NCBI RefSeq assembly: GCF_001194135.2
Contig: NC_069006.1
Span: 6,077,411-6,141,410, forward strand
DNA from: Octopus bimaculoides
Lineage: Eukaryota
Direction of reading: 5' to 3'
DNA length: 64,000 bases
Shown here piece by piece: positions 1-22,500 of this stretch (position 1 is its first letter; every line of letters begins with the position of its first letter). The position numbers were made by a program, and so were the translations under genes. Below the pieces are notes generated by a model, which saw only the letters and a list, made by a program, of their open reading frames with translations, did no database searches and was not told where the DNA came from.

Positions 1-41
<41 letters not shown>

Positions 42-164
42 TGTGTGTGCCTGTGTGTAAGTAAATGGCCAAAACAAACTTCACCAGTTGCTATATTTTC
101 TGTAGCTATGTACAAGTGTGTATGTAAGTATGTATGTATGTATTCATATGCATAAATGTGTATA

Positions 165-197
<33 letters not shown>

Positions 198-341
198 GCA
201 TACATGCACACAAAACACATATACACACAGACATACATATACACACAGATACATATATACACACATACACACACATATATATGTGAGTGTATCATCTTAT
301 TCTTGTCTGAATTTGACTGCGTTTGTCATCAATTCTGTCTT

Positions 342-347
342 TTTATT
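342..347 (-). promoter_or_regulatory. Possible CAMTA polyadenylation signal (AATAAA)
   Basis: tttatt on the plus strand ~200 nt past the stop codon; the real 3' UTR may extend beyond the window. Confidence 0.25.
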
Positions 348-545
348 GTTGTCTTCCTCATCATTTCACTCTTCTTTCTGTTTCTTCTTCATCTCTTTTT
401 CTTGCTCTTCCTCTTCACTCTTACTCCCCCCTCCTCTGCCTCTTCTTCTTCTTCCTCCGCCTCTTCCTCTTCTTCTTTTTTTTTCTCTTTTGTTTACAAT
501 TAAGTTATGTACACACTGCAGACTTTACAGGTCACCTCAAGTCCT

Positions 546-753
546 TCAAGTTGTCGTGGAGGTGGTGTTGGTGTTGGTGGCGCTGGTGCTGGTACTGGCT
601 GTAGTTTGATCTCTCTCTTCAGACGTTGCTAACACATGGGCTTTCTGTTCCTCTATCTGACCCTCGATGTCTGACGTCAAGGGACTCACATCAACGTCGA
701 CTACATCACCGTCGGCAGTTTGGACTTCTCCGTTGTTTAGGTCGGATGGTGAA
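546..753 (-). CDS. CAMTA: CAMTA terminal coding exon ([24 protein letters not shown]...TSTTT*)
   Basis: Acceptor gattcttcag|T; open in phase 2 for 68 codons to TGA at 548-546; acidic then Thr/Ser-rich. Confidence 0.8.
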
Positions 754-3700
754 CTGAAGAATCAGAAACAATACAAAGCGGTTATATAACAGGGGAGGAA
801 AAAAAACTGCTCAAAATCTATTGCAAAAAATCAATAAATATTGGATATTGATGTAAAATAGAAAAATAATTATTAAAACCAAAAAAACATGAAAAGCTAA
901 AATGAAGAAGTGAAGAAAATATTTACTTTTGAATATGTAAAGTTCATATTTTTCAATAATTTTAGAAAAGGAAAACAATTAATTGACACAGGTGTGGCTG
1001 TCTGGTAAGAAGCTTGTTTCTCAACCACATGGTTCTCGGTTCAGTGTCACTGCATGGCACCTTGGGCAAGTGTTTTCTACTATAACCTCAGGCTGACTGA
1101 AGCCGTCAGAGTGAATTTAGTAGACAGAAACAGAAAGTGTGTGTGTCTCTGTGTTGCCCTCTACCACTTAACAACTAGTCTTGATGTGTTGACATCTCTA
1201 TAACTTAACAGTTTGGCAAAAGAGACTGATAGAATAAGCATTAGGCTTTAAAAGAAAAAAAGGACTGGTAGTGGGTGGTGTCGATTCATTGACTAATAAT
1301 TCTCCAAGGTAGTGCCCCAGCGTGGCCACAGTCAAATGATTGAAACAAGTAAAAAGATAAACGATAACAGTTAATTAGAATTAATAATTAAGTCAAAATC
1401 CTTCGTTAAAGATGTTTAGAAATGGATGTAAGAGTTTCTACACTTTTATTTGGTCTGCTAGAAACATCAGTCAAATCATACTGCAACATCTATAAAAAGG
1501 AAGGACACATCAGGTAATGTAGTCCAAGATATACTAATTCTAATAGAAATAAAAAGCAAAGATGGGGTCGTCATCATCATTTAATGCTAGTTTTCTATGC
1601 TGGCATGGGTTGGGCAGGATACGATGAGCCACAAGTCTGCTTTGGCATAGTTTCTATGACTGGTTGCCCTTCTTAATGTCAACCACTTTACAGTGTGCAT
1701 TTTCCCCCTAATATACAGACATTAAAGGGGTTGGCAAGTAACATGCAAATTTTTGCTCAGTCAACAACCATGACAGATATTTTGTTGAGAAAAAATATTG
1801 AAAATTCTGGTACCTTTTTAATGATACCAGTATGTAGTGTGGCTGGCTGGCTGGTTGGATGGATGGACGGAACTAGCAGGTCCAGTCTGACTTTTGGTGG
1901 TTGACAGAACAGCTGCAACCAGTGAATATTTGCCACTATTTTTGTTAAGAGTTCAATATCAGGAGATGTTGAACTGATGATAATCTACCCAATGTCCTTC
2001 CATACAATCCATCTACCAAATTTCTACTCACAAGGCTTTGGTCAACCCAAGGTTAAAGAGAAAATGTTTGCTAGAAGGTGCTGTGCAGTAGGATCAAACC
2101 TAGAAACAGGTGGTTGTGAAGTAAACTGCTTGACAATGCTTTCTGTCCTCAAGGAGCACAAAGTTTTGATAGAAAAGCCACTGACATTTTCTGCTATGAT
2201 TCCCATGGATTTATGGACAGAAGTTCTAAATGTTTGGTAAACTGACCTAAAATGCTGCAAAAGAGTAGCACCAACGAGGATATCTTAATATAAAACACAT
2301 GCATAAATATCAAGAATCATCAAGAGAGAAAGTGACTGAAATGGGAAGTTGTGATGAACATGCCTTTCTTAGTGATGGTAGTGAAGTGACTGTAGATGAA
2401 GAAAAAAAAGTAGGTTACAGACTCAATAGGATTTGAATCTGTCACTCACTGCACTGTTGTGTCAGCCAAAAAAGGTGTCACCACTCAACACCTTTATTAA
2501 TGCAGGTCTCTTGCTCATGGAATAATTGTTCTGATAACTTTGAGAGGAATGATTTTCTGATGTCACACATAATAATACTATTGGAGATATCTACTTTACT
2601 CCCAGTTGTCCATCAGAGAGATTTTGAATTCCAGCTCTGCTATCCGAAGGAACCCACCTCAGTTACACAATGCTCCTACATCAACCATAAAGACAACTGT
2701 ACTTCTTCAGGGCACTCAAAGACAGTCCTACCAAGACCATCCAGCTTATGTTATACCTCTTTCTAACACTTTGGGGTGAAGTTGATTTTTTAAAAAATAG
2801 CTTTATCAGAAAAGAAAGATAAGGACTGATGAGCTGAGTGCAAGGGGCCAAATTTGGTGAGGGAATAGGGTGAACAAGTGCATTAGCCTTGGATAGGAAA
2901 CCTTTTTACAACTGAGCCCTGTAGTGGTGGTTAACTAGGAGACAGATTATGGAGGAACAGTGAGAACTTTGTGGAAGATTCAATTAAAAAAGAGAGCACT
3001 GGAAAATCAGGACAAAATATTGACAATGGCCATGTCACATTGACTGCACCAGTTCTTGTCCAATCACCAAAGTTAAGCAATGTTGAGCCTTGTTAGTACT
3101 TAGATGGGTGACTAGTTGGGAAACCAAGGTGCTGTAAGCATCTCCCTTTAAGGGTAGATGTGGCTGTGTCATAAGAAGTTTGCTTCACAACCACATAGTT
3201 CTGGGTTCAATTGCTGTGTGTAGCATCTTGGGTATGTCTTCTGCTAAAGCTGAGATTGACCAAAGCCTTGTGAGTGGATTTGGTAGATAGAAGCTGACAG
3301 AAGCCCATTGTATCTATGTGTATGTGTTTGACCCCTACCACTGGTTGACAACCAGTGTAGGTTTGTTTATGTCCCTGAATCTTAGCAAAAGAGACCAATA
3401 GAATAAGTACCAGGCTTGAAACAAAAAGAACTGGGTTTGGTTTGTTCAACTAAACCCATCAAGGTGGTGCTGCAGCATGGCTGCAATCCAACAAGTGAAA
3501 CAAGTAAAAGATGAAAGATAAAAGAAGGTCTTTGAGAGCCGGAGCTGGAGACAGCTGCGGCATTTGTTGAAGTTTGGCAAATGGGGAAGAGAAGAGAGAG
3601 GAAGCAGCAATGCATGCATTAGAATGCGACATAAATGATGTGCATAGTTGCAATGGGAGTGAGATTGACATGCCGGGGTGGGGGGATTGGTTGTGGAAAG

Positions 3701-3916
3701 AGCCAAGGAAAACGAGAGAAACACATAAAAAAGAATATTACAACATTGAGAGCAAAAATAATAAAAACAACAACAGCTAAAAGAGTGGAATAAAGAGAGA
3801 AGCATATATAGATGTACTAGGACATTAGGGGTGTGTGTGTGTGTGTATACATACACATGCACATAAATGTATGTAAATATATATGCATTCATATATATGT
3901 GGGTGTATATATGTGT

Positions 3917-3964
<48 letters not shown>

Positions 3965-3998
3965 GTATGTGCATTCCAATGTGTGTATATATGTATAT

Positions 3999-4043
<45 letters not shown>

Positions 4044-5460
4044 TATATATTGATATGGGTGTATATACATATGTAGGTGAGTGTATATGTGTGTGTTGGG
4101 CCTCTAACTCCTTATGAAATAATAGGTACAGCACTGTGAAAAACACCAGGATTTGGACAATTTAAGCCTGACAAAGGTAATTGATGTCCAAGTGTGAACC
4201 CAACCAATTCCTTCTCGAGAGAGAAAGAATTAGGGAAGAGGAATGAAATGCAAAGTGGACCCCAGAGGAATTTGAACTCACACACATGTATATGTCAAAG
4301 TATCAAAGTTTCCTTTGAGAGAGAAGCACCATTTGTTGTAGCTACTTGACTGCACCCCACTATAAAAAAGTCACGTGCCCTCACCTCTCTGCTAGTTTTG
4401 CAGCTATGCTGAGGTAACACTTTCTGTCATATCATTCTATAACTGATCCAGTTAAGACCTATCTCATGACTTTGTGACAGACCCTGTTAGTTTTGGCATC
4501 TGGTCTGCTTCCTGTTTGTAAGGAAGTCTTGAAAAAGTATCTGGAGTTGTGAAGCTAAAGCCTGTTCATATGATTTTTAAGCAAATTATTAGAAAGCCCT
4601 CAGGGCATCAGGTTTCAGTTTAGGAACATCTCATCTATGATTGATATCACATCTTCCTCCTTTATGCCGATGTAATCAATAATTACTGGTGTCTATAGAG
4701 ACCAGTACGTATCTGCATATGTCCTACTGGCGAGGTGAAAACACTTCTAAATTCTTTTCTACTCTAGGCACAAGGCCCGAAATTTTTGAGGAGGGGGCCA
4801 ATCGATTAGATCGACTCCAATACGCAACTGGTACTTAATTTATTGACCTCAAAAGAATGAAAGGCAAAGTCGACTTCGGCAGAATCTGAACTCAGAATGT
4901 ACTTCTAAATTGGTCCATCAATGTTTCATATACTGCTTTGGAGTCTGCAGTCCATGAATTATCTTCTTGGCATGAGGACCTCTTATTCTGTATTAAACCA
5001 GAGCTGAACATCTTGAAAATTTGCCAAAGATTTTAAAGGGTTCACCTTTATATTTCCTTCAATCCAAGTTTCTTTTTCTGCTCTTGCCTTTTTAGGAAAG
5101 TCTTTAATTTTATTTTCTATTTCTGGGAGTGGTCTTTTTTTTTTGTGAAGATATTTTTCAGTCCTTCAGTTGACCATTTAAGCGATATGAAGTTTTTATT
5201 TTACACCACGCAACAATTTGGGTTTTTGCCTGGAAATTATATTTTTGTGTATCCCAGCTTCTCAGTTTGGGTCAAATTTAATTAATTTATTTATTTGGAT
5301 GTGTGTGTGCATGTACATATATATTTCATGAAGGACTAATGTCCCAAAAGTTAGGGCTCCTTCCCTTCCTTCATTTAAGTATTAGACAAAGAAAACTTTT
5401 GTTATATCTTGTCCTGTGCTGTCTTTTTCCTTTTTATTTATTACATTTACAACATATATC

Positions 5461-5497
<37 letters not shown>

Positions 5498-5942
5498 NNN
5501 NNNNNNNNNNNNNNNNNNNNNNNNNNNNNNNNNNNNNNNNNNNNNNNNNNNNNNNNNNNNNNNNNNNNNNNNNNNNNNNNNNNNNNNNNNNNNNNNNNNN
5601 NNNNNNNATACATGTATGTACATATATGTGTATGCAAACGTGTGTGTGTGTGTGTGTGTGTCTTGTGCATAGGTGCATGTGTGTATGTGTGTTTATATGC
5701 CAAGTGCAAGATGACCAGAATTACTACCTGTCCAAATGTTGCAGCAGCTGCTGCTGCCGCTGCAACATTCGGTGGTGCAGCTCCTGCAGCAGTGAGGTTA
5801 TTAGCACTGACCTGATGGGAACGGATTAGTTTCCATAGTTCTCTGCACCAGGCAGATGGAAGGCAGGAAGCAAAGAAAGTGAGACACATTTTAGGTTAAA
5901 CAGAAACATTTATCACATAACACTACGACTAGCAAATATCAT

Positions 5943-5987
<45 letters not shown>

Positions 5988-6252
5988 GTTGCATTATATA
6001 TATATTCCTCCTACTAACATGGAATGAAAACTTCTTATGATAGCATGAAATTATAACATTATCACTAAAGTTTTAGCCATGATTAGCACAAGCGAAACTG
6101 GTAGACTATGTAAATATATTATTTCATAAAATGTGAATATATATATATGTATATATTTTGTCCGACATAAAATTTCTGTACATTTTGTTTGTTTTTATGT
6201 TTTTTACTACAATTCACCATGTAGGAAAAATGTTTTTACTGGACCTTTTCAC

Positions 6253-6289
<37 letters not shown>

Positions 6290-6568
6290 NNNNNNNNNNN
6301 NNNNNNNNNNNNNNNNNNNNNNNNNNNNNNNNNNNNNNNNNNNNNNNNNNNNNNNNNNNNNNNNNNNNNNNNNNNNNNNNNNNNNNNNNNNNNNNNNNNN
6401 NNNNNNNNNNNNNNNNNNNNNNNNNNNNNNNNNNNNNNNNNNNNNNNNNNNNNNNNNNNNNNNNNNNNNNNNNNNNNNNNNNNNNNNNNNNNNNNNNNNN
6501 NNNNNNNNNNNNNNNNNNNNNNNNNNNNNNNNNNNNNNNNNNNNNNNNNNNNNNNNNNNNNNNNNNNN

Positions 6569-6608
<40 letters not shown>

Positions 6609-7061
6609 CATTTTGATGATGACCACAAGTGTGAAACTAGTTGTTACAATGTCTTCTATAGAAAATATGAGACAAATATATATCTACACATTTCAGTGTA
6701 TATCATATATCAACATTATTCTCCCCATCACTTAATGTCCATTTCTCATGCTGCTATGATTTGGAGAGGCTGCCACATTTGAGGTTCAGCATAATTTTGA
6801 GTGGGCTGCTCATTTAGATGGTTCAGAAGGCTACATCTTAGTCACAGGATTCCTACTGAAGACACAAGGCCTAAGATTTTGGGGGAGGGGACTAGTCAAT
6901 TACATCAACCCCAGTGTTTCACTGGTACTTAATTTATCAACCCCAAAAGGAAGAAAGGTAAAGTCGACCTCGGTGGAATTTGAACTCAGAACATAGCAAC
7001 AGTGAAATACTACTAAGCACTTCATCCAACATGCTAATGATTCTGCCATCTCGCCTTCTTC

Positions 7062-7112
<51 letters not shown>

Positions 7113-9008
7113 CTTATAACATTAATTCTATGGTTAGAGCTAATCATCCTCACTCCTTTAACTTAGACTCCTATTTAGCAACTCCACCTTACCCCTACCC
7201 CCTCTCTTCTGCCTTCCATGCTATGTTCCTTTTGTCTTATATATTTGATGTCCAGTGAATCTATGCTTGTCGTTACACCAATAGCATCACCAATGTCCAT
7301 GGTACACCAAGTGTCTCCTTTTCATCTTCTAAAGATAATTTGTCATCACACATGATTAATTACTATCTAATCCTATCACATGAAGATAATGGAGTAACGG
7401 AGCTTCATAATTCACCTCTCCCTCTTCCTCATCACTATCAGTATTTGCTACATTATGTCAAGATGGAATGGTCAGGCAGTGCCATGTGTGAATGACATTA
7501 ACATCCTAAGATACAGTCCAAACACTTCACTTCACTTCTACTCCTCTGTTCCTCACCGTTCTTTGTTTTAGACCATGACCACCTCAGAGTAATTCATCTG
7601 AGTCAATGAAGGAGCTGCTACAGGATTGTCGGATCTGCAAGACATAGCAGCCAAACTATTCTGTCTTGAACAAGAAAGGACACATATAGTAGATATACTA
7701 TATAGGGAAAAACAGAGAAGCTGGTCATGGTTGCATCATGTTTGATTGTAGGTCTGATACCTGACATGTCTATCAGTTTAGTCATGTCTGTTGTCTGTAG
7801 AAACCAGGGGCCTCCACATAGAAAACCCAACACATCTTGCATCATTACACATTTGTTGATTTTGGTGAGTTTCATTACTATGGAGTACAGTGTTACCTGT
7901 ACATACTGCCGCCTCAGCATACAATCTCATAAACTATCACCTGTACTTATTAGTATCTGAGCACACAATTATTATTTTGCAAGAAGCAGAATTCCTTCTG
8001 GGTTTTTCCTGGGTCAGCCATGTTCTGAACTTCTTCTAGCCAAAGCCCTTAAACCAAAGACATTACCTAATGCTGTCCCCTAATTTGTTAACTTTTCAAA
8101 ACCATAGCAACAGTCTAATACAATGGTTCTCAACCTTTTTAATATCCAGGTCAGATTCCAAACCTGTATTTTTTTAGGGAGCCATACCAGAAAAAGTAAA
8201 ACACAAGTCAATTAAAAAAAAGTTTATCATATTTATAGAGGGAGGACTGCCAGGGGACACTGAAAGGATGCTTGAGGGCCATGTGCATCCCTCAAAGCCA
8301 CGATTGAGGAGTTTGTGTTACATAAAGAAGTTTCAATGTTTTGGTTGTGTCTGGGGAGAGTCATCCTCTTTTCGTGCCTCATAATTTAACACACTCACCG
8401 GTAAAATTATTTCTAAATTTTTACTAATTTTCCTAAAATCTTCGTTGCATCTTGCAACTTTTTCAATAGTCAAAACTATTGAAAAGGTTGCAAGACGTAA
8501 TGGAAATTTTAGAAAAATAAAAGAGAAATAAGTGGAAATTTTACTGGTGAGTGTGTTAAATTATAAAGGCACCAAAAGAGAATGACTCTCCCCAGACACA
8601 ACAAAATATGCTTCAACACATGAACTCACATAAAGAATCTTGCAAACCAAATCCCAAAACGAAATTTCAATGTTTCTATTTCTATTTATTTGGCTCCCTC
8701 CTCTCTGCTTCTGTGTCTATCTTTCTACCTTTGTCACTCAGAATGACAAACAGACAAATTCACCTCTTTCTTCATGTGTTACTATCTTAACCATTATTAG
8801 TCCTAACTGCTATATAATCCACTGTTATAAACTACTTTCTTTTCCTTCTCTAGTAAAGACCTTTATTAGAAACTCGGTCGCCAATGACCATCCTGACAAT
8901 CCAGCCACATACACTTGTCTTGCTTTACTTCTCAGTTCATATTAATACATCTAAATTAATCTACCTTCACCTAAATTGCCTTCCTACATCAGTAAATGTG
9001 TGTGTACA

Positions 9009-9059
<51 letters not shown>

Positions 9060-10688
9060 TAGTCCATGGGTCTGTATTAGTATTAGTCTACTTCAACACA
9101 AAACAAACAATAAACAAAACAAACAAAAGAACAATGATCTGACTAGAACCACAAGGAACGGAGATGAAGAAGTAATTAATTTTTACCTTTCGTTTGCTTC
9201 ATTGACTAATTGAGATAGTTGGCTGCCATCCAACTCCTCAGGCTGCTTCCGTTGATAATGGCTCCTGGTTGGAAGAAGAGGAGAAAGAAAATTAAACAAT
9301 GATAAAATAATATAAATAAAAAGAAGAGTAAAACAGGATATGTGAAAGTAAACACACCAGGTTGATACTGTTGTTAAGTAACCCTCATCAATTCTGCCCC
9401 AACGGATCTCTTTTATGAAGGCAACCAACCAAAAAGTAATGCGTGACCCCATAGGTCTTCGAAACTTGTTTGTCAGTTTCATCTGTTGATAGTTAGTGAG
9501 GCCATCCTAGAGCAATCAGGGCATGTTGGATCTCGTTTTCTATACACACTTTTCATACAAGTTCAAAAAGTGTCAGTTGGTAACTGCAGTGGAGACTGAT
9601 AAACTAGAAATAAGACTTGGTTCTTTGCAACCCCATCAAATCAGAGCAGTTAGAAAGCAACCTAACAAAGAATCACCTTCATCATCATCACCGTCGTCGT
9701 CATAGTTTTAACGTCCAGTTCTCTATGCCTGCATGAGTCAGATGGAATTCCTTGAGGCAGATATTCTATGGCCATATGCCCTTCTTGTCACCAACCTCTT
9801 TACAGAATGTACTAGGTACTTTGTTTCATGGCACCAATACTAGGGACATCACCAAGTAACTTGCAAGACAGGACCCCTAGACAAAGTGGGGGTGCTATCA
9901 TCACACACATGCGCACACACACACATGCGCACACACACACACATGCGCATGAACACACACACAACAAGTGTCTTTCACTTTTCATCAACCAAATTCACTA
10001 ACAAAGCTTTGCTTGGCCTGAGGCTATAGTAAAAACTCTTGTCTAAGGTGCTATGGAGTGAGACTGAACTTGAGACCATGTGGTCGGGAAGCAAACTTCT
10101 TACCAAACTCACACAACTTTATTTGATAAAAACTTGTTGTGTGTTAATGTGAGTTTTCCATATTGGTTAACTGACAAATTAAAATTATTCTTAAAAAAGA
10201 AACCAATCAGCCTCACCTAAATCTTTGTTGAATGATGACAGATGTGTTACGGCTTTTCTTGAGACGCTCTGGTTCTTTGTAGCTGCGATACTGATTTTGA
10301 ATGGATGCATCCGTCTCACTCCGCGACTTCTTGTACCGCTTCTGTGCATAGTAACTGCGGAACTGACTTTGGATTAGTACAGCCGCTTGTGTCATTTTCT
10401 TGAAGTATGCATACTGGAGAGGAAGAGAGAGAGAGGGACAAGGAAACGGTCTTTAGTTGGTGATTTGTTCTCAAATGAAAAGATTTTGTTCTTCAAACTG
10501 GAAGTTATAAATCTTCATCTTAATTTATAATTAATCATAATAAATAATGCAACTTCATCACTAAATAAAACAGATGTTAAGGTAGCTAATAGGGTCACTA
10601 TGTACTTACTTGGACTACTAGAAATAATAACCAGATCTCCTCAAAAGACAACTTACTGTCCTCCTAAATGAGGACATATTGGACCATG

Positions 10689-10730
<42 letters not shown>

Positions 10731-12085
10731 ATGGTCATGCTTGGAAGGTCTCTGGTTATATGTCTGCTCAGCCTTGGTTAATCTGAAGCTAAACATCATC
10801 ATCATATTTATATCCTTTCCTTCATTCATTATCTGTTCTTCTGCTCGCAGCCAAGTGAGTAGGCAGTGTTAAGTGCCTCATTCAGAGCAGAGAGTAATAT
10901 AATAAGCTCTTCAATATCTGTTATATAAACAGCTTTGAAGAAACTCATACAAAAATCTAGGCAAAAAGTAGCAGATACAGTTTATCCCTTTGTTACCATA
11001 TTTCTGTTGGAATACACATCCTCTGTTTCGATTAATTTTGAAAATACTGAAGGATCTAGTACAATAACTTCATCATTATTAAACTGGTGTTTGGAATAGA
11101 AATTAACCCGAAATTTTGATGGCAAGTTTTAATATAGATCACTTCAACCCTTTTCCATGAAATACAAAGCCTTTGTTTCAATTAATTTTGAAAATACTGC
11201 AAAAAGTAGCAAAGTAACTTTGTTGTTATTAAGCAGCTGTTTTTTTTTAAAATAAAATTTTGAAGACAAATTTTATTTTAGATCACTTGTTTGTTTCTTA
11301 GAAGCAGAGGTAGTCTTAGGCAGGTCGACATCAAAATTGTTGGCACGCCATCGTCAGATGAAATGAGAATAAGTTCACCACAACCAAATAAAACAGATGC
11401 AGGAACAAGAAAGAGAGGGGAAATAGATTTTGTTTATTCCAGGAAAGCCTTGCTGGCCCCAATCTATCTGCCCCTTGTCTTCTTATTTTTCAGCAATCTG
11501 ACTATGATCATGATATCTGAGAAACTTGTCGCAAACATCTCAATGTCTAATTCAAGACCTACAATGTTGCTGTAGATGGTGACAAGTAGAGATAGTATTG
11601 GTGGTTGTCGATTGGATAGCCATCATCATCATCATTTAGTGCTCGTTTTCTGTACTGGCATCGCTTGGATGGTTTGACATGATCCAGTGAGCCACAGGGC
11701 TGTGCTGAGTGCCATTGTCAGCTTTCAGATGGCTTCTATGACAGGATTCTCTGTCTAATGCCAAACCACTTTACAGAGTGTAAAAGGATGCTTTCTCATG
11801 CCACTGGCACAAGAAACAGGATTTACTAAAGGTAAATATTTGAAGCTGAAGAATGAGACAAAGGTAATTCCTGGAAAAGATAGGGTCCCTGACCAAAAAC
11901 GTAAATGATAAAGTAGACTTTGTGGAAATTTGAACTCAGAACGTAAAGGGATACGACTATAAAAATACTGCAAAGCATTGTCAGAGGCTCAACTGATTCT
12001 TATTGTGCCAGTTCACAAAAACGCATCACTGAAAGGCAAAACAAATAATTTTGTGAGAGAGAGAAAGAAAGAGAGATGGAGAGAG

Positions 12086-12140
<55 letters not shown>

Positions 12141-15100
12141 NNNNNNNNNNNNNNNNNNNNNNNNNNNNNNNNNNNNNNNNNNNNNNNNNNNNNNNNNNNN
12201 NNNNNNNNNNNNNNNNNNNNNNNNNNNNNNNNNNNNNNNNNNNNNNNNNNNNNNNNNNNNNNNNNNNNNNNNNNNNNNNNNNNNNNNNNNNNNNNNNNNN
12301 NNNNNNNNNNNNNNNNNNNNNNNNNNNNNNNNNNNNNNNNNNNNNNNNNNNNNNNNNNNNNNNNNNNNNNNNNNNNNNNNNNNNNNNNNNNNNNNNNNNN
12401 NNNNNNNNNNNNNNNNNNNNNNNNNNNNNNNNNNNNNNNNNNNNNNNNNNNNNNNNNNNNNNNNNNNNNNNNNNNNNNNNNNNNNNNNNNNNNNNNNNNN
12501 NNNNNNNNNNNNNNNNNNNNNNNNNNNNNNNNNNNNNNNNNNNNNNNNNNNNNNNNNNNNNNNNNNNNNNNNNNNNNNNNNNNNNNNNNNNNNNNNNNNN
12601 NNNNNNNNNNNNNNNNNNNNNNNNNNNNNNNNNNNNNNNNNNNAGAGAGAGGGTAGTCGCCCCCACCTGCTTATATCGGCGGTAGTAACTTTGGATGAGG
12701 ATGGCTGCTTCTATTTCTTTTTGCCTCTGCTGCAGTAACTGCTGCTTATCTCTATACTGTCGATATGCATTTTGGATCACTTTGGCCGCTTCGTACAGCT
12801 TTCGTTGCTCCTGATCTGCAACAACAAAACATCACCCAACACGGTTAGAGAAGACAATCACAAGAGGCTGCAGAGTAAAAGCAGGGTTGGTCTTCATCTC
12901 AATAAATCATGTAGGACTTAAGCTATATGAACAGTGCCGTTTAGTCAACTACTTGTGTGCCATAAATCTGGTCAATCTATGTTCACCTAGAGCTATACTC
13001 CAACAACAAACCCCTGATCTATCAAGAGCTGAGAAAATATTTGATATATTTGACATATGTATGTATGTATGTATGTATGTATATGTATGTATGTATGCAT
13101 GTGTATGTATGTATGTATGCATGTGTATGTATGTATGTATATGTATGTATGTATGTATGTATATGTATGTATGTATGTATGTATGTGTATGTATGTATGT
13201 ATGTGTATGTATGTATGTATGTATATGTATGTATGTATGCATATGTATGTATGTATACACACATATGTATATACATTTATATACACATACATATATATAT
13301 GCTCACATATGTACACAGACAGACGGACATACAATGAAATATTCTTTTCTACTCTAGGCACAAGGCCTGAAATTTTAGGGGAGGGGCCAGTCGATTAGAT
13401 CGACTCCAGTACGCAACTGGTACTTAATTTATCGACCCCGAAAGGATGAAAGGTAAAGTTGACCTCGGTGGAATTTGAGCTCAGAACACGAAGACAGACA
13501 AAATACCATTAAGCATTTCGCCCAGCGTGCTACACACAATGAAATATTGAGAGAAAAGCAGATTCCCTGTTAAATTTTTCTGTCAGTCTGCACTTTGGAG
13601 GACAATTAGAGTACAAAATCCATTATTTGTGAGCGGCATCTGACTGTCAAACATTTGTCATTCTGAGTGTTAGCAAGTAAGAACAGATTTTGAAAACAAA
13701 CAATTGAATGAATATTATATACATATATATATATATATATATATAGATACCTGATAATGTTAGCTGAGAGAAGTCCTTCTCCATGTACGTTGCTGGAGCA
13801 TTGAAGTACTCTGTAAAATCAGCAGTTGTAGGTGGTGGAGAATCTATCTGGAAATATGGACTATAAGGACTGGGTAGACAGGTGGAGTCTGGACTGACTG
13901 ATGAGGCAGGAGTACCCAGATCATTATAACTGAAAGCCAAATGGTTAGATTCATCATACAAACACCGGAAAACAGATTCTCTTTCAAAAGATGAAATCTA
14001 TAAACAACTGTAACAAATATAGCTGAGAAACTACCACCCATTATTCCATAAGTCTTTATTCCATTAACCATTACCTTCCATGTTCTATCTTTTACTTGTT
14101 TCAGTCACGAGATTATGGCCATGCTGGGGTACTGCTCTGAAGAATTGTTAGTGGAATAAATTGACCCCAGGACTCATTTGTTTCTTAAGCTCGGTACTTA
14201 TTGTATTAGTCTCTTTCACTGAACTGCTATGTTATGGGGACATAAACACACCAACACTGGTTGTCAAGTGGTGGTGAGAGTCAAATACAGACACAAACAC
14301 ACAAACATGTGATTGGCTTCTTTCAGTTTCCGGCTACCAAATCCACTCACAGCCTGAGGCTAAAATAGAAGAAACTTGCCCAAGGTGCTATGCAGTGGGA
14401 CTGAACCCGGAACCGTGAAGCTGAGATCAATTAGAAAGGTGTAATTAGCCAGAGATGTTGCTATGGTGACTGTAAGCTGATTAAATCCAGCATGGTGGTC
14501 TGGGGGAATTGTAAGAGTTACTGTACAGAATACATTGTAGTACTTGTAATTCTTTGTAGTTTGAGTTCAAATCTTGCCATGGGTTACCAGCTGCCATAGA
14601 TGGGACTGGAATCTCACCAGGTACATAGCCACAGTTAATGGTGGATAACCTTGGAGCAATGCTTGACACTGAACTGGCTGAGAGGAGACGATACGAGATG
14701 GCGATGCTGTGTATATGTATGAATGTGTGCACATTTGCCTGATAGATGGAAAAAGAAAGAAGCCTGTCATTTATGTATGTGTGTGTGTGTTAGTTGTAAA
14801 TGGCTGTCACTGTCACACTAATACTGCCATTCATTTTCAACAGTCTGCAAGAATTTGTGTGCCAATGGGGAAATATTACCTCACTTGGAACTGCCTAAAT
14901 AAACTCTGTCTGACCCATGCTAGCTTGGAAAAGTGGACATTAAAATTGTGATCACACACACACACACACACACACAGACGATGTTAGGAAGGGCGTCCTT
15001 GGCATTAGGAAGAACATCCTGTTATAGAAACCATGCTAAAGCTGACATGGAACATAACAAAGCTTTGTGACTCACCAGACCCCGGCAGACCATTCAACCC

Positions 15101-18100
15101 ATGCCAGCTGGGAAAAGCAAATGCATGATGATGATGATGAGGAGGAGGAGGAGGAGGATGTATGTATGTTTGCATGTATGGTCTCTTCTGCTTTAAATAT
15201 TTTCAATTCTTCCTCTGAGAAAGGAGCTGGTTTCCAACAAAGATACAGAGTTCCATCATTGCAATGTAGATAACAAAACAATGTCACATTTTAAACTCAA
15301 GAAATGCCTTACACATTTTTGTTGTTGCACTTACAGCTTGTATTTGCAATATGTGAGTTAATTAATTGATGAATTTCTTTTTCTGAAAACCCCAGCTTAT
15401 GCAGATTGTCCCTTGGGCATTGAATGTATGTATGCACCCACACAATGGGCTTCTATAATGTGGGATTGAACCTGAAACGACGTGGTTGTAAAGTGAATTT
15501 CTTAACCTTAGACCCATGCCCAAGAGAATGATGACATAAGTACCTGTTGTGTACTGGGGTTAATGTGATCAACTAGCCCCAAATTTCAGGCCTTGTGCCC
15601 ATAATAGAAAGACTTGCTATTATTATAAACAACCAGCAGTGGAATGTCTCGTGACATACCAGTAAGATGGTAGGGATTAAATGTTCTCATGATTCCACCA
15701 ATGAAGCACCTTACCAAGAAAATGGAAGCAAAAGTAAAAGAAACGTTGTTGAAAGAGACTTACCGATAATCTTCAAATGAAAGACCATCACCAAGTGGGG
15801 TAGATATTCCAGAATCTTCCCCGTAAGATGATGCGATTGGAGAGTTCTGTGAGGCTAGGGAGCTATGAGAGCTGCTGCGCTCGCGACATATTTGCTCTGT
15901 TTCAGCAGTAGAATCCTCCCGGCTCGGGGAAGATTTTATACGTTCAGGCATAGCATCAATGATTTGACGTGCTAAAGTGACCATATGTTTCTTTGCTTCT
16001 TCGCTGCCATCTTCGCCCACAATTGTTCGCTTCTCATGCACTTTCAGTTCGTCATCGGAAGGTATGCGTTCTCCATCTAGAAGGGGACTTTCCCCTTGAT
16101 GGGATGATAGCTCATCTGAAGAAACAAACAATTACTAATTAATATGTAACCACAAATATTCGTTTATTTTTTACATTAAGAACAACTTCAAAAGGAATGA
16201 ATTAGCACCAAATACAAATAGATTCCTTAGGTTTTATTCCAACATGAATTCTTCATCAAATGTCAAATTTTTACTTTGAGTTTAAGCTATGGCTTTGAAT
16301 CTGCCCAGGGTTATCTCTTTTCAGTATTTCCCATGGGGTGGAGGCGCAATGGCCCAGTGGTTAAGGCAGTGGTCTCGTGGTCATAGGATCGCAGTTTCAA
16401 TTCCCAGACCAGGCGTTGTGAGTGTTTATTGAGCGAAAACACCTAAAGCTCCACAAGGCTCCGGCAGGGGATGGTGGCGAACCCTGCTGTACTCTTTCAC
16501 CACAACTTTCTCTCACTCTTACTTCCTGTTTCTGTTGTGCCTGTAATTCAAAGGGTCAGTCTTGTCACAGTGTCACACTGAATATCCCTGAGAACTACGT
16601 TAAGGGTACACGTGTCTGTGGAGTACTCAGCCACTTGCACGTTAATTTCACGAGCAGGCTGTTCCATTGATCGGATCAACTGGAACTCTCGACATCGTAA
16701 GCGACAGAGTTCCAACACCCCATTTCCCATGGTAGAAGGCCAAAGAGTTAGAAATGTGCATCTGGGAATCCAATAGTGGGAAGTACTGGGCATAAATGGT
16801 GTTTTTACACCATTTACCATAAGTGAGAATTTTTTCTCCATGGTAACTGCAGTGAATTTGCCTTTAGAAGTTAAAATATGTCACAAACATAATTCAACTA
16901 ACATACAGTTCATTTATTCCCAATCACTAATGGGTACTGATGTTGCTATATTGTTAACCAAATAATGTATATCCATCACTACTTAGTACAGAATTAAATA
17001 AACAAACAAATAGATAAACAAACAAATAAATAAATAGATAAAAAGAGTAATATCAGACAACTGTTTTCTATCAATAACTTAACAACAGATTCCCAGAATA
17101 AAATATCACCTGTTTGTCTTCACTGACAATTTAACACTTTCATGATGATGGACTTAGTTACAACTATATTTAAATCTTTTAATTACTTTTCATTATAATT
17201 AAGACTCTAGTTAGTGGAGGTTAGTAAAATATACATAACATAATATTTTGATTGTTGCTGTTGTTGTCAGTCCTTAATTAGTTCTGATTAACTTAATCTA
17301 TAATTAGAGATCTCTAATTAGAGACTACATTATCTGAAATGTCCTTTTCATAAATCAATAAAACTGAGTTAGATTTAGCTGCTATTTCTAGTAGACAGAG
17401 TGTCAATATATTTTTGATGCTTATAACTGCTAAGTTACAAGGACATAAACATGCCAACACCTGTTGTCAAGCAGTGGTGCGGAACAGACACAGATAAAGA
17501 GACACACACACATACATACACATACACCAAACCCACTCACAAGGCTTTAAGCACCTCGGCCAGCATGCAACCGATTCTGCCAGCTCACTTAAGGAGTTCA
17601 GTTAAATAAGGATATTACAAAAGCCTTACCTGTATCCATGGAGAACAGCAGATGGTTGTCAGAGCTCTGTCTTCTAGGGCCTCTGATCATTATTGAGTCA
17701 GTTGAAGACAGATGTTCTGTCCCCAGGGAGGTATCTGTGTGCATGAGCATGTCCGGAATTTGGTTGGAAGAATCCATTCCTTGTGAGGAAGCAGAGAGTA
17801 GGGGTTGTTGTTGTTGTGCTGTTTTGAAGAAACTGGACAGGTGTGGTTCAGATATAGATTCCCGCACCGGTTTATGGTAAGTGTCGGAGAGGAGGTTGTT
17901 CCGCTCCACAGAGGTTCGTTTGGGGGACACAAAGTCAACAGAGTAACGTTTGTTAGATTTCTGCTGGGGAGATGTACTGTTACTTCTGCTGCCGCCACCG
18001 CCGCTGCCGCCGCCACCACCACCACCACCACCACCACCACCACCACCACTGCTGCTGCCACTACTGTTGTTGCTGCTGCTGCTGCTGGTGGTGCTGCTGC

Positions 18101-19511
18101 CCAAGCACTGTTCACTCATCCTTCGCACCAGCTTACTGTTGCCCGGATATGGCGGGGGAGGGGGTGGTGGTGGTGGAGGAGCCAAAGGAGGGGAAGATGT
18201 CCCGGCGAAAAGGCTGTCGTTGCCGGAATCATCGGAGGTTGTGGAAATTGCTGAAGGAAATGTGTTTGATTGTTCACAAGCAATCACCCCTGAACTTGAC
18301 ACCGTATTCACGTTGTCAGGGGCAAGGAATGTATCACTAATGGTACTTGAAACTTCACCACTGCCACCAGAAGGTTCCACCGTGTCAGGCACACTGATTG
18401 TAGTCCGAGGAGTGAGTGCCTTCTGGTTGTTGTGGGTCTGCTCTAACAACTCAATGCAGTTGGCCAGGTTGTGGTGGCCATGATGCCGGGCTGCTGTCAA
18501 GGGTAGTATCCCATCCTTGTTGCAGACCTTCAACGGGCCTCTGTTCCAATGATAAAGTGTCTGAGCAGCTTCTGTGTAACCTTTTGCACAAGCCCACATC
18601 TGAAATGTACAGGACAAACAACGAAAGAGGATCAGAAGGGAGAATGATGACGATCACCATTATGATGACAAGGGTTTCAGAGATGCAAGACATAAGATAC
18701 AATAGACGGATGGTGTCTAATTTACTAAATTAAAAATCGTGATATTTATCGTTATCTATTTTATCATTTCTGAGGAAGTAAAAAAAAAAAAGAAAACAAA
18801 AAAAAAAACGGTAACTGCACAGGAGTCCATCATAAGTATGCCTGTATACATATGCATGTGTGTGTGTATGTGGACAGCAGAACATGTACAATCTGTGGAA
18901 GGGTGTTCCACTCAGTCGGAGGATTGAAAAGGCACGTGGAAGGAGTTCATACTGTGGCACTGGTTCCCTTTGCCAGCAAGCACAGCTGTGCATTATGCAA
19001 TAGAATGTGCAAATGTTTGGCAGGACTCAAGAGTCATACAAGGGCCTGACATTGCATCACTGATGACTCATTTCAGTGATTCTGTCTAGGAATGGCTTGG
19101 CTCGTATACGAGAAAGCACCTGCTATGTATGTCCTATGTATGTATGTATGTGTGTGTGTATGTGTGTGTGTGCATGCATGCATGTATGCATCTATGTATG
19201 TATGCATGTATGTATGTTTGTATGTATGCATGTATGCCTGTATGTGTGATTGCTTGTTTCCATGAGTCTTTGTATGACATCATTCAAGTAATGGAGATGT
19301 CAACTTCACATCTCCAGTGGCTGGGCAGTTTCGACACGAGACAACTGGTTGAATGAAAATATCTTAAATGAGGTGCAGGTAAGGGTTAGTGACAGGAAGA
19401 GCATTCAGCTGTAGAATACTAGCTTAAAAAACTCATGCAACCCCTGTCACCATGAAAAATAAACAAATACATCTGAAAACAATTTTTATAAATGTGAGAG
19501 TGTGCATGCAT

Positions 19512-19556
<45 letters not shown>

Positions 19557-22500
19557 TGGGTAAACCCTTGTGTTCTGAGAGTGTTGCTATACTCTGTCTC
19601 CGGATGCAAGAGTTGATGTCACACCAGGCAGTGTAGCATCCCTGAAGGTGTTTTGGTCTCTTTTCCATTGTGACACCAGAGCTACCTGGAGCCATCCACC
19701 AATGCAGGTGCCAAAACTCCGGCACAGCGGCCCAAGCTTTGGCAAGTGAGATGTATACACATAGAGAGAGATATATTCTTACCAGTGGCGTACAAGAATA
19801 ATCATCGACATTGTGGGCATCTACTTCATATTCTAGCACAAGGCTGGGATTCTCTGATCTGAAAGAAACAACAAAATATCATTTATTAATTTAAATAACC
19901 AGTGACCACCACCCCTGCCTCTCGCACCGTAAATAATAACAGCAGCATGAATCAAGGAGAGAAGCCCCTATATGGTCATACATCCTGCTAGTAAAACTAA
20001 ATTCCCCTCAAATTACACCTTACGGTCATAAATAATTAAAGGACATATTAGTTTAATTCTAAGTATCCCTCAGAAGACAGACAGGATGGTGATAGATGGA
20101 AAGGTTTTAATGAAGGTTGAATTAGGGTTGAACAACAACAACAACAGGTTAATTAGTAAGCTCCCATTAAATTTCTTATCACATGTGACTTAATTACATT
20201 CTCCTCTGACAAACTCCAACCAATGGGAACTACATGTATTCTTAGTTGTCTGATAGTTGACTGAGGTCTTTTGGGGTGAACGAGGTATTTACGCACATCG
20301 TCTCAAAGGAGAAGCCAGTCTCCAAGATAAAATCCAACAAAGCTGTGTTCATATGTGAGTGTGCGGTTCGAGGAAATGGATGGAGGTTAGGTTGGTGTTT
20401 GGTCTCCTTCCAGCTCTGATTTGCCTGATCAGAGCTGAGATGAGACACTTGCTCAAGGTACTGCACTGTGGGACTGAACCCAAAACCATATGGCTGGTAA
20501 GCAAGCTTTTTAACCACACAGTCATGCCTGCATCTATATGAAAGAAGTTTATCCACCATATGAGGATTTTAAACAAAAGAAGCACCATACGGCTGCATGT
20601 CTGTCGGTATATTTAATATAAATAACCAAGGTGAAGATGGGTTAATTAAGACGGTGTCTTGATCAGCCACATGTATTCAATTATTAACAGAGAAAATAAC
20701 AAAAATGTGTGCGATTGTGTGTGTATGTACAAGGATACATATGTGTGTGTGAATGTACTTGAATATGTCTATGTGTACCAGAAAATATGTGTGTGTGCAT
20801 GTGTATTAAGTTTCCAATCTGATTAGTCACAGTCAAGAGAAATTTGTTCGTCTACAACAAAAAAAAAACACTGTGTATCATATCTTGTTCACACTGTTCT
20901 AGAGAGGGAAATTTAGTAAACCTGAGTGAGGTTAGTATTAGAGATACTGTTACATTACATAATGGCTAAAATATGATATTTGCCTGAAGCTGTGGACTTG
21001 AAATAGCTCACTGGCAACAAGATTTACAGAAAAAAAAAATGCTTTTTTTTCTTTGTTAGTTGCTACATTAACTTGTATCAGAACTGTGTAAGAACTAAGA
21101 ACAGGATTTACAGACACAAATAGTTGGAGCAGCTGTATTAGTGAGTATGGGAACTAAGTTAAAACTGAGGACAGGATTTACAGAGAGAAATATTACTTGT
21201 AGTAGTTATGTTAATCTGTAGCAGAGCTATATATAAAATATGAACAAAATTTACTGACTGGGAGGAGCAGCCAATATTATGCTGTTTGGATGTGAAAGGT
21301 TGAAGGAAAAGGAATAACAAGTTTGTTGCAGGAATATTTAATCCAGGTCACTGTATTCAATGCAAAAAAGCAACTCAAGAATATGAAGGCAGTTTGCTAG
21401 AATATTATTGAAGTCATAAAAAAATCTGACCATTCAAGGCTTTGTGTGGAACTGGATATAATAACAACAGTTTCATCTTTGGTGCACTTTTCCTGATAAA
21501 GATCAGCACTATGTATTCGGTGCATTTTAGCCACTATGGGGAGGTGGCAGACGTTAGACCAGACAAGAAATAGCAGTCAGCAGACAGTAGAAGAACCAGC
21601 AGCAGGCCAGAGTGCTGTTACAACATAAAAACAATGGACAGTGGCAGCAGTAACACATAGTAACCAGCTAACATTAAGGAACTCGTGATAGGGACTACTA
21701 CCATACTTAGTCCAAGAACAATAAGCTTTGAACAATGCCATTCTTTGCTTTTGGTAGGAATGACGACATTTTTGTTTATGATAAAAATATTGTTTTTTCA
21801 TGAAAACTCTCTAACAAATTTCATTGTTCTTTATTGTGATCGGTTAATATTTGAATATTACCTCCAATGGATAAGGCTTCTAATAACTTCAGCATAACCA
21901 AGTGCTCCAGCTAGATGCAACAAAGTCATACCCCCAGGGCCGGCCTTGGGGAAGACATCGTTATTGGCCCAGGGCAGTCGGGACAATGTCATTATATGCT
22001 GTACCAGGCGCCATTCAAAGTCATTGCTTTGTTGAGAATTCTGTGGCTAAAATGAAAAACAAAAAATTATTTCCTGCAGACATTAAAGACACAAATGATA
22101 ATTAACCAGATACACAAATGAGAGTTAATTAGGAGCAGTAATTAGAGTTAAAATGAAATTTCAGAAGTGAATTGCTTATTAAAGGTTATGATCCTTCCTT
22201 TGAAAATAAAAGTTGGTTTTAATTATTTAATATTTATCTGATCAATAATCTCTCTCTGAAGGCATTGCAGCAAAGAGAAGTTCAAAGAACTACCTTTGTT
22301 TCAGGAAACAGAGCTATTTCCACTAGAGAGAAAATATTGGTGAAGTTTGCATCGAAAAACTTCATAAGAGATAACTTCACAATATCATTTCTCATAAAGT
22401 CCCTTCTGAAAGGAAACTTAGATGTCTAATCTCCTTAAGAATGAGATTAAAGAAAAGTTTTAAGAAGAAATGGGAGAGGGGAACCGTACAATTGTTGCCT

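Follow-up and report, generated by a model that had tools for sequence, protein, structure and literature searches.

Structure of the 3′ region of the octopus CAMTA gene

The window analysed here is a 64,000-nt stretch of the Octopus bimaculoides genome, and its minus strand carries the 3′ part of a CAMTA gene, in which ankyrin, IQ and C-terminal exons are legible in stop-to-stop reading frames. CAMTA (calmodulin-binding transcription activator) proteins link calcium/calmodulin signals to transcription, and CAMTA1 has been associated with the function of the cerebellum and with neurodevelopmental disease. A 31-nt unit, 5842-5812, lies between the exon after the IQ region and the terminal exon; on comparison of sequences it is very probably a genuine and conserved penultimate coding microexon of CAMTA, most likely alternatively used. 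The features to which we refer are listed below, with a slash at each exon boundary.

9264-9187, minus strand: exon before the cassette, 78 nt, ccaaccag/GAGCC...GAAAG/gtaaaa, read directly
5843-5888, minus strand: 3′ splice-site region of the cassette, pyrimidine-rich tract, 4 UGC in the last 40 nt, 78 nt free of AG before the acceptor AG
5842-5812, minus strand: 31-nt frame-switch cassette AGAACTATGGAAACTAATCCGTTCCCATCAG, ggtgcag/AGAACTATGGAAACTAATCCGTTCCCATCAG/gtcagtg
5805-5811, minus strand: 5′ splice site of the cassette, gtcagtg, same bases in the related locus L001, ranked 6 of 444 GTs in the intron
5811-5725, minus strand: possible exon extension or regulatory intron segment, with an open frame to a second donor, a conserved block and a hairpin
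753-546, minus strand: coding part of the last exon, acceptor ttcttcag/TTCACC..., open in two frames

A first-pass annotation of this DNA had proposed a cassette exon here that switches the reading frame of a dual-coding last exon, and its coordinates, minus strand, phases and splice sites proved correct base for base. The product of exon 9264-9187 is a split-codon residue (R) and 25 further residues; it comes after ...IIQQRFR and aligns with ...QQRFRSHYQRK... of mollusc CAMTAs, and its last two bases, AG, open a codon (phase 2). The unit is exactly 31 nt long, and its open phase-2 frame was read directly: AG joins A to give R, 10 residues with the core ELWKLI follow, and the frame exits in phase 0. 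We assigned it to a class of penultimate frame-switch cassettes of CAMTA genes that was defined from bivalve, arthropod, amphioxus and vertebrate isoforms. Like these, the octopus unit follows the post-IQ exon and precedes the terminal exon, and a split codon in phase 2 leads into it. With its 3n+1 length it would move the last exon into another frame when included, and ELWKLI fits a core of the form hydrophobic-Trp-[DEKN]-hydrophobic. The unit is not a repeat copy.

Two predicted C-terminal tails from one terminal exon

If the cassette is skipped, AG joins T to give S, and reading of the last exon is displaced by one base, into frame +1, for 68 codons (...TSTTT) up to a TGA at 548-546. The resulting tail of 69 residues, split Ser included, would be an acidic and Ser/Thr-rich end (D+E 13, K+R 2, S+T 24). 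If the 31-nt exon is spliced in, 11 residues would be added and the last exon would be read in frame 0 for 15 codons up to a TGA at 708-706, yielding a strongly basic end of 26 residues, cassette included (K+R 9, D+E 1), that carries the conserved hydrophobic-Trp motif. Both tails and both stops had been predicted in the first-pass annotation. The chance that a 68-codon +1 frame is open in the last exon is ∼0.05, and the start of the octopus skip tail, SSPSDLNN, resembles those of bivalve skip tails, SSPPDQSN in oyster and SSNPEEN in scallop. Because both stops sit inside the terminal exon that starts at 753, as the annotation had also said of the inclusion stop, neither isoform should be a target of nonsense-mediated mRNA decay by the exon-junction rule, provided that the 3′ untranslated region has no intron. 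We infer that both isoforms are made in octopus and that the two tails differ in function; as a speculation, the basic tail might serve in nuclear targeting or in binding of calmodulin or another partner, and the acidic tail in activation.

Evidence for the exon from splice sites, bivalves and a related genome

Scored with a simple, rather crude matrix over the 8,433-nt intron, the cassette acceptor ranked 3 of 484 AGs and its donor 6 of 444 GTs, and no other acceptor and donor spaced by 200 nt or less pass those thresholds together. Chance alone would yield about 0.4 pairs of this kind, and ∼0.08 that in addition have a 3n+1 length and an open frame. Because of this last figure the splice signals do not by themselves settle the reality of the exon; they are suggestive, weak evidence.

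Evidence independent of the splice-site scores came from bivalves. We searched 1.84 billion representative proteins exhaustively with the C-terminus of the inclusion form as query and recovered full-length animal CAMTAs; cluster look-ups then led to named isoforms, of which the following show the two forms.

Argopecten irradians X5, cassette included: ...SETGD/R-DVWKIVHLRR/LQPRGKQHSLRQHSAGGIRH, stop
Argopecten irradians X3/X4, cassette skipped: ...SETGD/SSNPEENSTVSDSTPPEASDTEK...
Ostrea edulis X1/X4, cassette included: ...PDSNE/S-ELWKFVHVRR...
Ostrea edulis X2, cassette skipped: ...PDSNE/SSPPDQSNTISDTK...
Potamilus model P0038, cassette included: ...TPEG/DLWNFLHVHR/VPNRCKHHTHRRMSPRH, stop
Sinanodonta model P0182, cassette skipped: ...TPEG/SPTDASTTHTEECPQDTEK...

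We built a peptide matrix solely from the three bivalve 10-mers DVWKIVHLRR, ELWKFVHVRR and DLWNFLHVHR. With this matrix the octopus cassette 10-mer ranked first among 7,956 positions of the intron and first among ∼118,000 positions of both strands of the 64-kb window, and this top match coincides exactly with the unit bounded by AG and GT, in the frame dictated by the upstream exon. A protein search with the skip-form C-terminus returned short fragments only and no cephalopod CAMTA, and a composite search for spliced or genomic cassette peptides returned one genomic open reading frame (ORF) and no transcript. In bivalves a third, very short C-terminus is seen at the same junction (...SETGD/RIS, stop, in Argopecten X8, P0190, and ...PDSNE/RIVMH, stop, in Ostrea X3, P0039), which points to yet another alternative terminal exon or acceptor.

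Through the genomic reading frame around the cassette we found ORF P0227 on a 68-kb ENA contig, and from it a 20.5-kb locus of a related genome, L001. L001 contains the orthologue of exon 9264-9187 (about 6638-6715), which precedes the cassette by 3.4 kb and has the same cag/G...AG/gt boundaries. When L001 was compared with window positions 1-20000 by blastn, a single match was obtained, window 5888-5805 at 84% identity, the remaining intron being too diverged. Conservation of the AG/GT pair in a relative had been set beforehand as a test of the proposed exon, and in this one genome the acceptor tgcag/ and the donor /gtcagtg are identical. Within the cassette, 3 of the 31 bases are changed (CTA to CTT, ATC to ATT and CAT to CAC), all at third positions and all synonymous, whereas 16 of 78 bases differ in the neighbouring constitutive exon. 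At the nucleotide level the cassette has thus changed less than its constitutive neighbour, as is typical of regulated exons. An island of conservation with synonymous change only, together with conserved flanking intron, is the usual mark of a regulated coding exon.

The frame switch in other bilaterian CAMTA genes

We asked of pairs of tails from the same species whether one DNA sequence can encode both, one in frame 0 after the insert and the other in frame +1. Cassette lengths outside octopus were inferred from this frame-consistency test, plus a published fly sequence. The results were as follows.

Argopecten (scallop): 21/21 codons consistent, 31-nt insert
Branchiostoma (amphioxus): 16/16 codons consistent, 31-nt insert
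Myxocyprinus (fish): 11/11 codons consistent, 31-nt insert
Uranotaenia (mosquito): 81/81 codons consistent, 28-nt insert
Centruroides (scorpion): 41/41 codons consistent, 28-nt insert
Homalodisca / Graphocephala (two leafhopper genera): 36 codons consistent, 28-nt insert

Random peptide pairs gave at most 5 consistent codons in 20,000 trials. For the Potamilus/Sinanodonta pair the automatic anchor was unusable, and back-translation by hand gave one mismatch. The tail after the cassette in Ostrea X1 was tried as a second frame of the skip tail and was rejected by the test; it looks like read-through of the donor. Moreover, the residue at the junction toggles between R and S in octopus, scallop, amphioxus and fish, and between N and K in arthropods, which matches the expectation for a phase-2 split codon. 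The cassette peptides compare as follows.

Amphioxus: VLWDYRSVFL
Hemichordate: NIWDMKERL
Sea cucumber: PCWDFIHY, stop
Scorpion: IWDYLHGKV
Limulus: VWDLLHGRV
Mosquito: TWDEQMTNL
Vertebrates: PL[VM]DHRL[YF]KR, without Trp

The hydrophobic-Trp-[DEKN]-hydrophobic core is thus shared by octopus, scallop, amphioxus, hemichordate, sea cucumber, scorpion, Limulus and mosquito, and the phase-2 position, the 3n+1 length and the hydrophobic-W motif recur in amphioxus, hemichordate, echinoderms, chelicerates, crustaceans and insects. Two cnidarian models showed no clear cassette. Within echinoderms the device is remodelled: the starfish Acanthaster planci (P0214, X1; P0097, X2) has an in-frame 24-nt cassette, HFWNVPSG, with no frame switch, and the sea cucumber cassette ends in its own stop (RPCWDFIHY).

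For Drosophila melanogaster, a microexon catalogue lists Camta ME672, a 28-nt alternative microexon at chr2R:9477219-9477246 (CATTTGGGATGGCAATTTGGCGATTGTG) that by reverse transcription PCR (RT-PCR) is more included in heads than in bodies (PMC8042270). In phase 2 this exon reads N-IWDGNLAIV, and it is the same cassette as the octopus unit. In vertebrates, the two tails of Myxocyprinus, ...RCRH/SPLMDHRLFKR/GERIEKGQGT and ...RCRH/RAKELRKAKEHESTAESPVAV, fit one exon read in two frames with a 31-nt insert, and a sturgeon CAMTA ends in ...RCRHSPLMDHRLYKRSERIEKGQGT. Rat Camta1 was assayed as a splicing target of Rbfox1 with RT-PCR primers that bracket the cassette; the forward primer lies within ...SSLLTKKQ..., and the complement of the reverse primer, AGTGAAAGAATTGAAAAAGGCCAAGG, is the start of the dual-coded last exon (PMC12713644) and reads RVKELKKAK in one frame and SERIEKGQG in the other. 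Camta1 has also served as the positive control for Rbfox1 binding (PMC6715404). The first-pass annotation had stated that human CAMTA1 has two C-termini made by a 31-nt cassette, and this is supported in substance by sturgeon and salmonid entries nearly identical to the human tails given there (...RCRHSPLMDHRL[YF]KRSERIEKGQGT), by the Myxocyprinus pair and by the rat primers. Its idea of an acidic-versus-basic switch common to molluscs and vertebrates held for the frame-switch cassette, which is shared, and failed for the contrast of charge, which is a molluscan feature absent from vertebrates, where the tails are short and mixed.

From these comparisons the octopus exon would be the orthologue of the 31-nt cassette of bivalves, amphioxus and vertebrates and of the 28-nt Camta cassette of arthropods, and because of this orthology the frame-switch device probably dates to the bilaterian ancestor. 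Between the two origins that the annotation had left open, ancient or convergent, the same phase-2 position, 3n+1 length and hydrophobic-W motif across phyla favour the ancient one. A stronger statement, that the cassette descends from a single event in the bilaterian ancestor, was kept over more than half a billion years in molluscs, arthropods, echinoderms, hemichordates, cephalochordates and vertebrates alike and has a neural-biased inclusion, we hold to be about as likely as not.

Candidate signals for regulated inclusion

UGC motifs near the 3′ splice site, a pyrimidine tract and an AG-free zone are reported for neural microexons that depend on eMIC/Srrm234 in flies and mammals, and the 3′ splice site of the octopus cassette has the features quoted there (PMC8797185). 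Its acceptor is among the only 4 of 483 AGs of the intron that have four TGC within 40 nt upstream. In L001 the cassette acceptor has 3 UGC in 40 nt and an AG-free zone of 70 nt, against 4 UGC and 78 nt in the window. Because the 3′ splice site is rich in UGC, the fly exon is enriched in heads and the rat event is linked to Rbfox1, our best guess is that inclusion of the cassette in octopus would be neural-biased.

Weighing the alternatives

Several observations weigh against the reading of 5842-5812 as an alternatively used 31-nt exon of ancient origin. The matches of both protein searches included no cephalopod transcript carrying either junction. The genomic comparison covers one related genome, L001, in which the last exon lies beyond the 20 kb compared. 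The Rbfox motif (U)GCAUG enhances inclusion of an exon when it lies up to some hundreds of nucleotides downstream and represses it from upstream; in the window no GCAUG occurs within ∼900 nt of the cassette, a 110-nt N gap (5607-5498) hiding the part 205-314 nt downstream. L001 has one TGCATG 198 nt upstream of its cassette and one 219 nt downstream (about 10388), the latter corresponding to a window position in or beside this gap. The octopus exon was not among the top five positions of a matrix derived from non-mollusc cassettes. The case for homology across phyla is thus made by position, phase, length class and the Trp core, and no significant sequence score stands behind it. Finally, in both genomes the reading frame beyond the 31-nt donor is open and allows a longer exon or a read-through terminal exon.

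Among the competing explanations, that of a real exon whose likeness to vertebrate CAMTA1 is convergent, 3n+1 exons having arisen separately at one and the same intron in protostomes and deuterostomes, fares best, and we regard it as unlikely. The mollusc cassette has only slight peptide similarity to PLVDHRLYKR, and vertebrates lack the Trp; lengths vary, from 28 nt in arthropods to 31 nt elsewhere and an in-frame 24 nt in starfish; moreover, a published comparison argues that the microexons of flies and mammals show high turnover and have converged, with only four positions of eMIC-dependent exons shared by fly and mouse (spg, EndoB, unc-13 and unc-104), Camta not included (PMC8797185). Against this, the position right after the post-IQ exon, the phase 2 and the logic of the frame switch do not vary, and intermediate taxa bridge the peptides through the hydrophobic-W-[DEKN]-hydrophobic core (VLWDYRSVFL, NIWDMKERL, PCWDFIHY, IWDYLHGKV, IWDGNLAIV and DVWKIVHLRR).

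It is improbable that the exon is real but constitutive, in which case octopus would always make the short basic tail and the long acidic frame would go untranslated. The strong conservation of the exon and its splice sites and the good acceptor and donor for this intron are what such an exon would show. Alternative use is favoured nevertheless, because the second frame of the last exon is open over its 68 codons and begins like bivalve skip tails, because the nucleotide conservation of the cassette exceeds that of its constitutive neighbour, and because many other species have both isoforms in annotations or assemblies: scallop, oyster, amphioxus, fish, mosquito and scorpion carry both as annotations, and the skip form is also present in Logan contigs of transcript length from scallop and scorpion. 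The fly orthologue, moreover, is demonstrably alternative. The cassette-exon reading is supported by the bivalve matrix and by L001, and the dual-coding last exon by the isoform pairs.

Less probable still is a functional unit longer than 31 nt, either a 115-nt exon that uses a donor at 5728/5727 or a read-through terminal exon, the 31-nt form being minor or absent. The frame past 5812, which the first-pass annotation did not mention, stays open for 28 residues to this second donor, CAG/gta, and the exon so defined, of 115 nt in the window and 91 nt in L001, has a 3n+1 length in each. A 14-nt block, CATTTGGACAGGTA (5738-5725), is kept in L001 (10169-10230 region) amid otherwise unalignable intron, and in Ostrea edulis X1 and two fish models the reading continues past the cassette donor (...HVRR/VGNHG... 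and ...LFKR/VSAA...). However, the second donor scored 0.41 against 5.58 for gtcagt and is gtacta in L001, the peptide encoded between them has low complexity and little conservation, length changes of a GCN repeat naturally come in multiples of three, and the cassette measures exactly 31 nt in scallop, in amphioxus and in fish. Use of the second donor would give the identical frame switch, so that the detail would be altered and not the principle; the block and the second donor could be a minor alternative donor or a splicing regulatory element. A 17-bp GCAGC/GCUGC hairpin lies at about 5769-5735, 45-80 nt 3′ of the cassette (146-nt fold, z -4.2). Its counterpart in L001 is a short stem with z -0.6, and because this fold is not significant we do not claim a conserved RNA structure downstream of the cassette.

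A chance pseudo-exon, with the acidic tail made by joining 9187 to 753 as the sole real C-terminus, is scarcely credible: the ∼0.08 expected from splice signals alone would allow it, but the first rank among ∼118,000 positions with an independent bivalve matrix, the sole conserved island against L001 in 20 kb, with synonymous changes only and identical splice sites, and orthologous cassettes at the same phase-2 position in many phyla stand against it.

Elsewhere in the gene, the draft assembly has N gaps that include 12643-12141, 6568-6290 and the one at 5607-5498. The first of these, of 503 nt, begins right after ...SYYRRYKQ of the IQ exon that starts near 12831. The reading after the gap, VGATTLSL, disagrees with VSLKDLRQ... 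in a related Logan ORF, P0005, and the end and donor of this IQ exon are therefore not reliably assembled.

Significance and comparison with known systems

Some members of this class are already known, the fly and rat cassettes as published exons and the bivalve isoforms as annotations, and the octopus exon joins them. The conservation of the frame-switch device across bilaterians appears not to have been pointed out previously: we found no paper describing the CAMTA cassette as conserved across phyla, and literature searches on CAMTA1 dual coding and on a 31-nt exon of Camta1 gave nothing relevant. A mouse ‘Camta1 microexon’ (PMC12868881), defined within 3-27 nt, was not equated with the 31-nt cassette and may be a different exon. 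If the stronger statement of a single event inherited from the bilaterian ancestor is right, the octopus unit would belong to one of the oldest splicing-driven dual-coding regions and would be among the very few alternative microexons that flies, cephalopods and mammals have in common. If it is kept at one position in octopus, scallop, fly, amphioxus and fish, a frame-switch microexon would stand out as a rare exception to the near-complete rewiring of neural microexon programmes that separates flies from mammals (PMC8797185), and such conservation argues for distinct, selected functions of both C-termini. An annotation of the octopus gene with the acidic tail alone would miss a conserved isoform, and for cephalopod neurobiology the locus offers a testable, ancient and probably neural splice switch in a calcium-responsive transcription factor.

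The nearest sequence relatives are the bivalve CAMTA isoforms of RefSeq (Argopecten irradians X1-X8, Ostrea edulis X1-X4 and unionid models), which are automatic annotations and not described findings. As in octopus, inclusion leads to a short basic tail (LQPRGKQHSLRQHSAGGIRH or VPNRCKHHTHRRMSPRH, each followed by a stop) and skipping to a long acidic tail rich in Ser, Thr and Pro. Scallop differs by an extra in-frame 24-nt microexon, DLLKFRRE, between the cassette and the last exon (P0185 and P0187-P0189; isoforms X1, X2, X6 and X7), of which we saw no convincing counterpart in the window intron 5811-754.

The vertebrate CAMTA1 cassette lies between the ...SSLLTKKQDQAARKIMRFLRRCRH exon and the last exon and, like that of octopus, has 31 nt, passes from phase 2 to phase 0 and splits an S/R codon; the last exon is likewise read in two frames, as SERIEKGQGT followed by a stop and as RVKELKKAKEL.... 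Its peptide, PLVDHRLYKR, differs in having no Trp, and both tails are short (∼21 residues) and mixed, neither being acidic. The skipped form is the one common to the paralogue CAMTA2. The vertebrate event is regulated by Rbfox1, whereas a downstream GCAUG is not shown in the octopus window.

Like the octopus cassette, fly ME672 sits right after ...RKIQQFMRQSKN, is entered by a phase-2 split codon, is 3n+1 long and has the hydrophobic-Trp motif; its length is 28 nt against 31 nt. The 28-nt equivalents of mosquito and scorpion also flip the frame of a long dual-coded last exon, but both arthropod tails are long (KLQRERA... versus ...RTSRKREAG...), in contrast to the octopus pair of a long acidic and a short basic one. 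As far as the text of the fly paper could be searched, the frame-switch consequence and homology across phyla are not discussed there (PMC8042270).

With the microexons dependent on eMIC (Srrm234/SRRM4) the octopus cassette shares its shortness, UGC next to the 3′ splice site, an extended pyrimidine tract and an extended stretch free of AG. Its 31 nt exceed the classical range of 3-27 nt and, narrowly, the definition of ≤30 nt; they fall within a broader limit of ≤51 nt given in another study (PMC4317164). The fly orthologue is enriched in heads, and Camta is absent from the four eMIC exons shared by fly and mouse (PMC8797185).

Finally, in human genes with alternatively spliced dual-coding regions, as in octopus CAMTA, a frame-shifting splice event upstream produces two C-termini from one terminal exon. 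A 2026 survey dates its oldest cases to jawed vertebrates, ancient cases of this kind are reported to be concentrated in genes with neural roles, and CAMTA1 is absent from the main text of both papers (bioRxiv 10.64898/2026.05.28.727796; PMC13160074). Whereas that survey stops at jawed vertebrates, the CAMTA device spans protostomes and deuterostomes.

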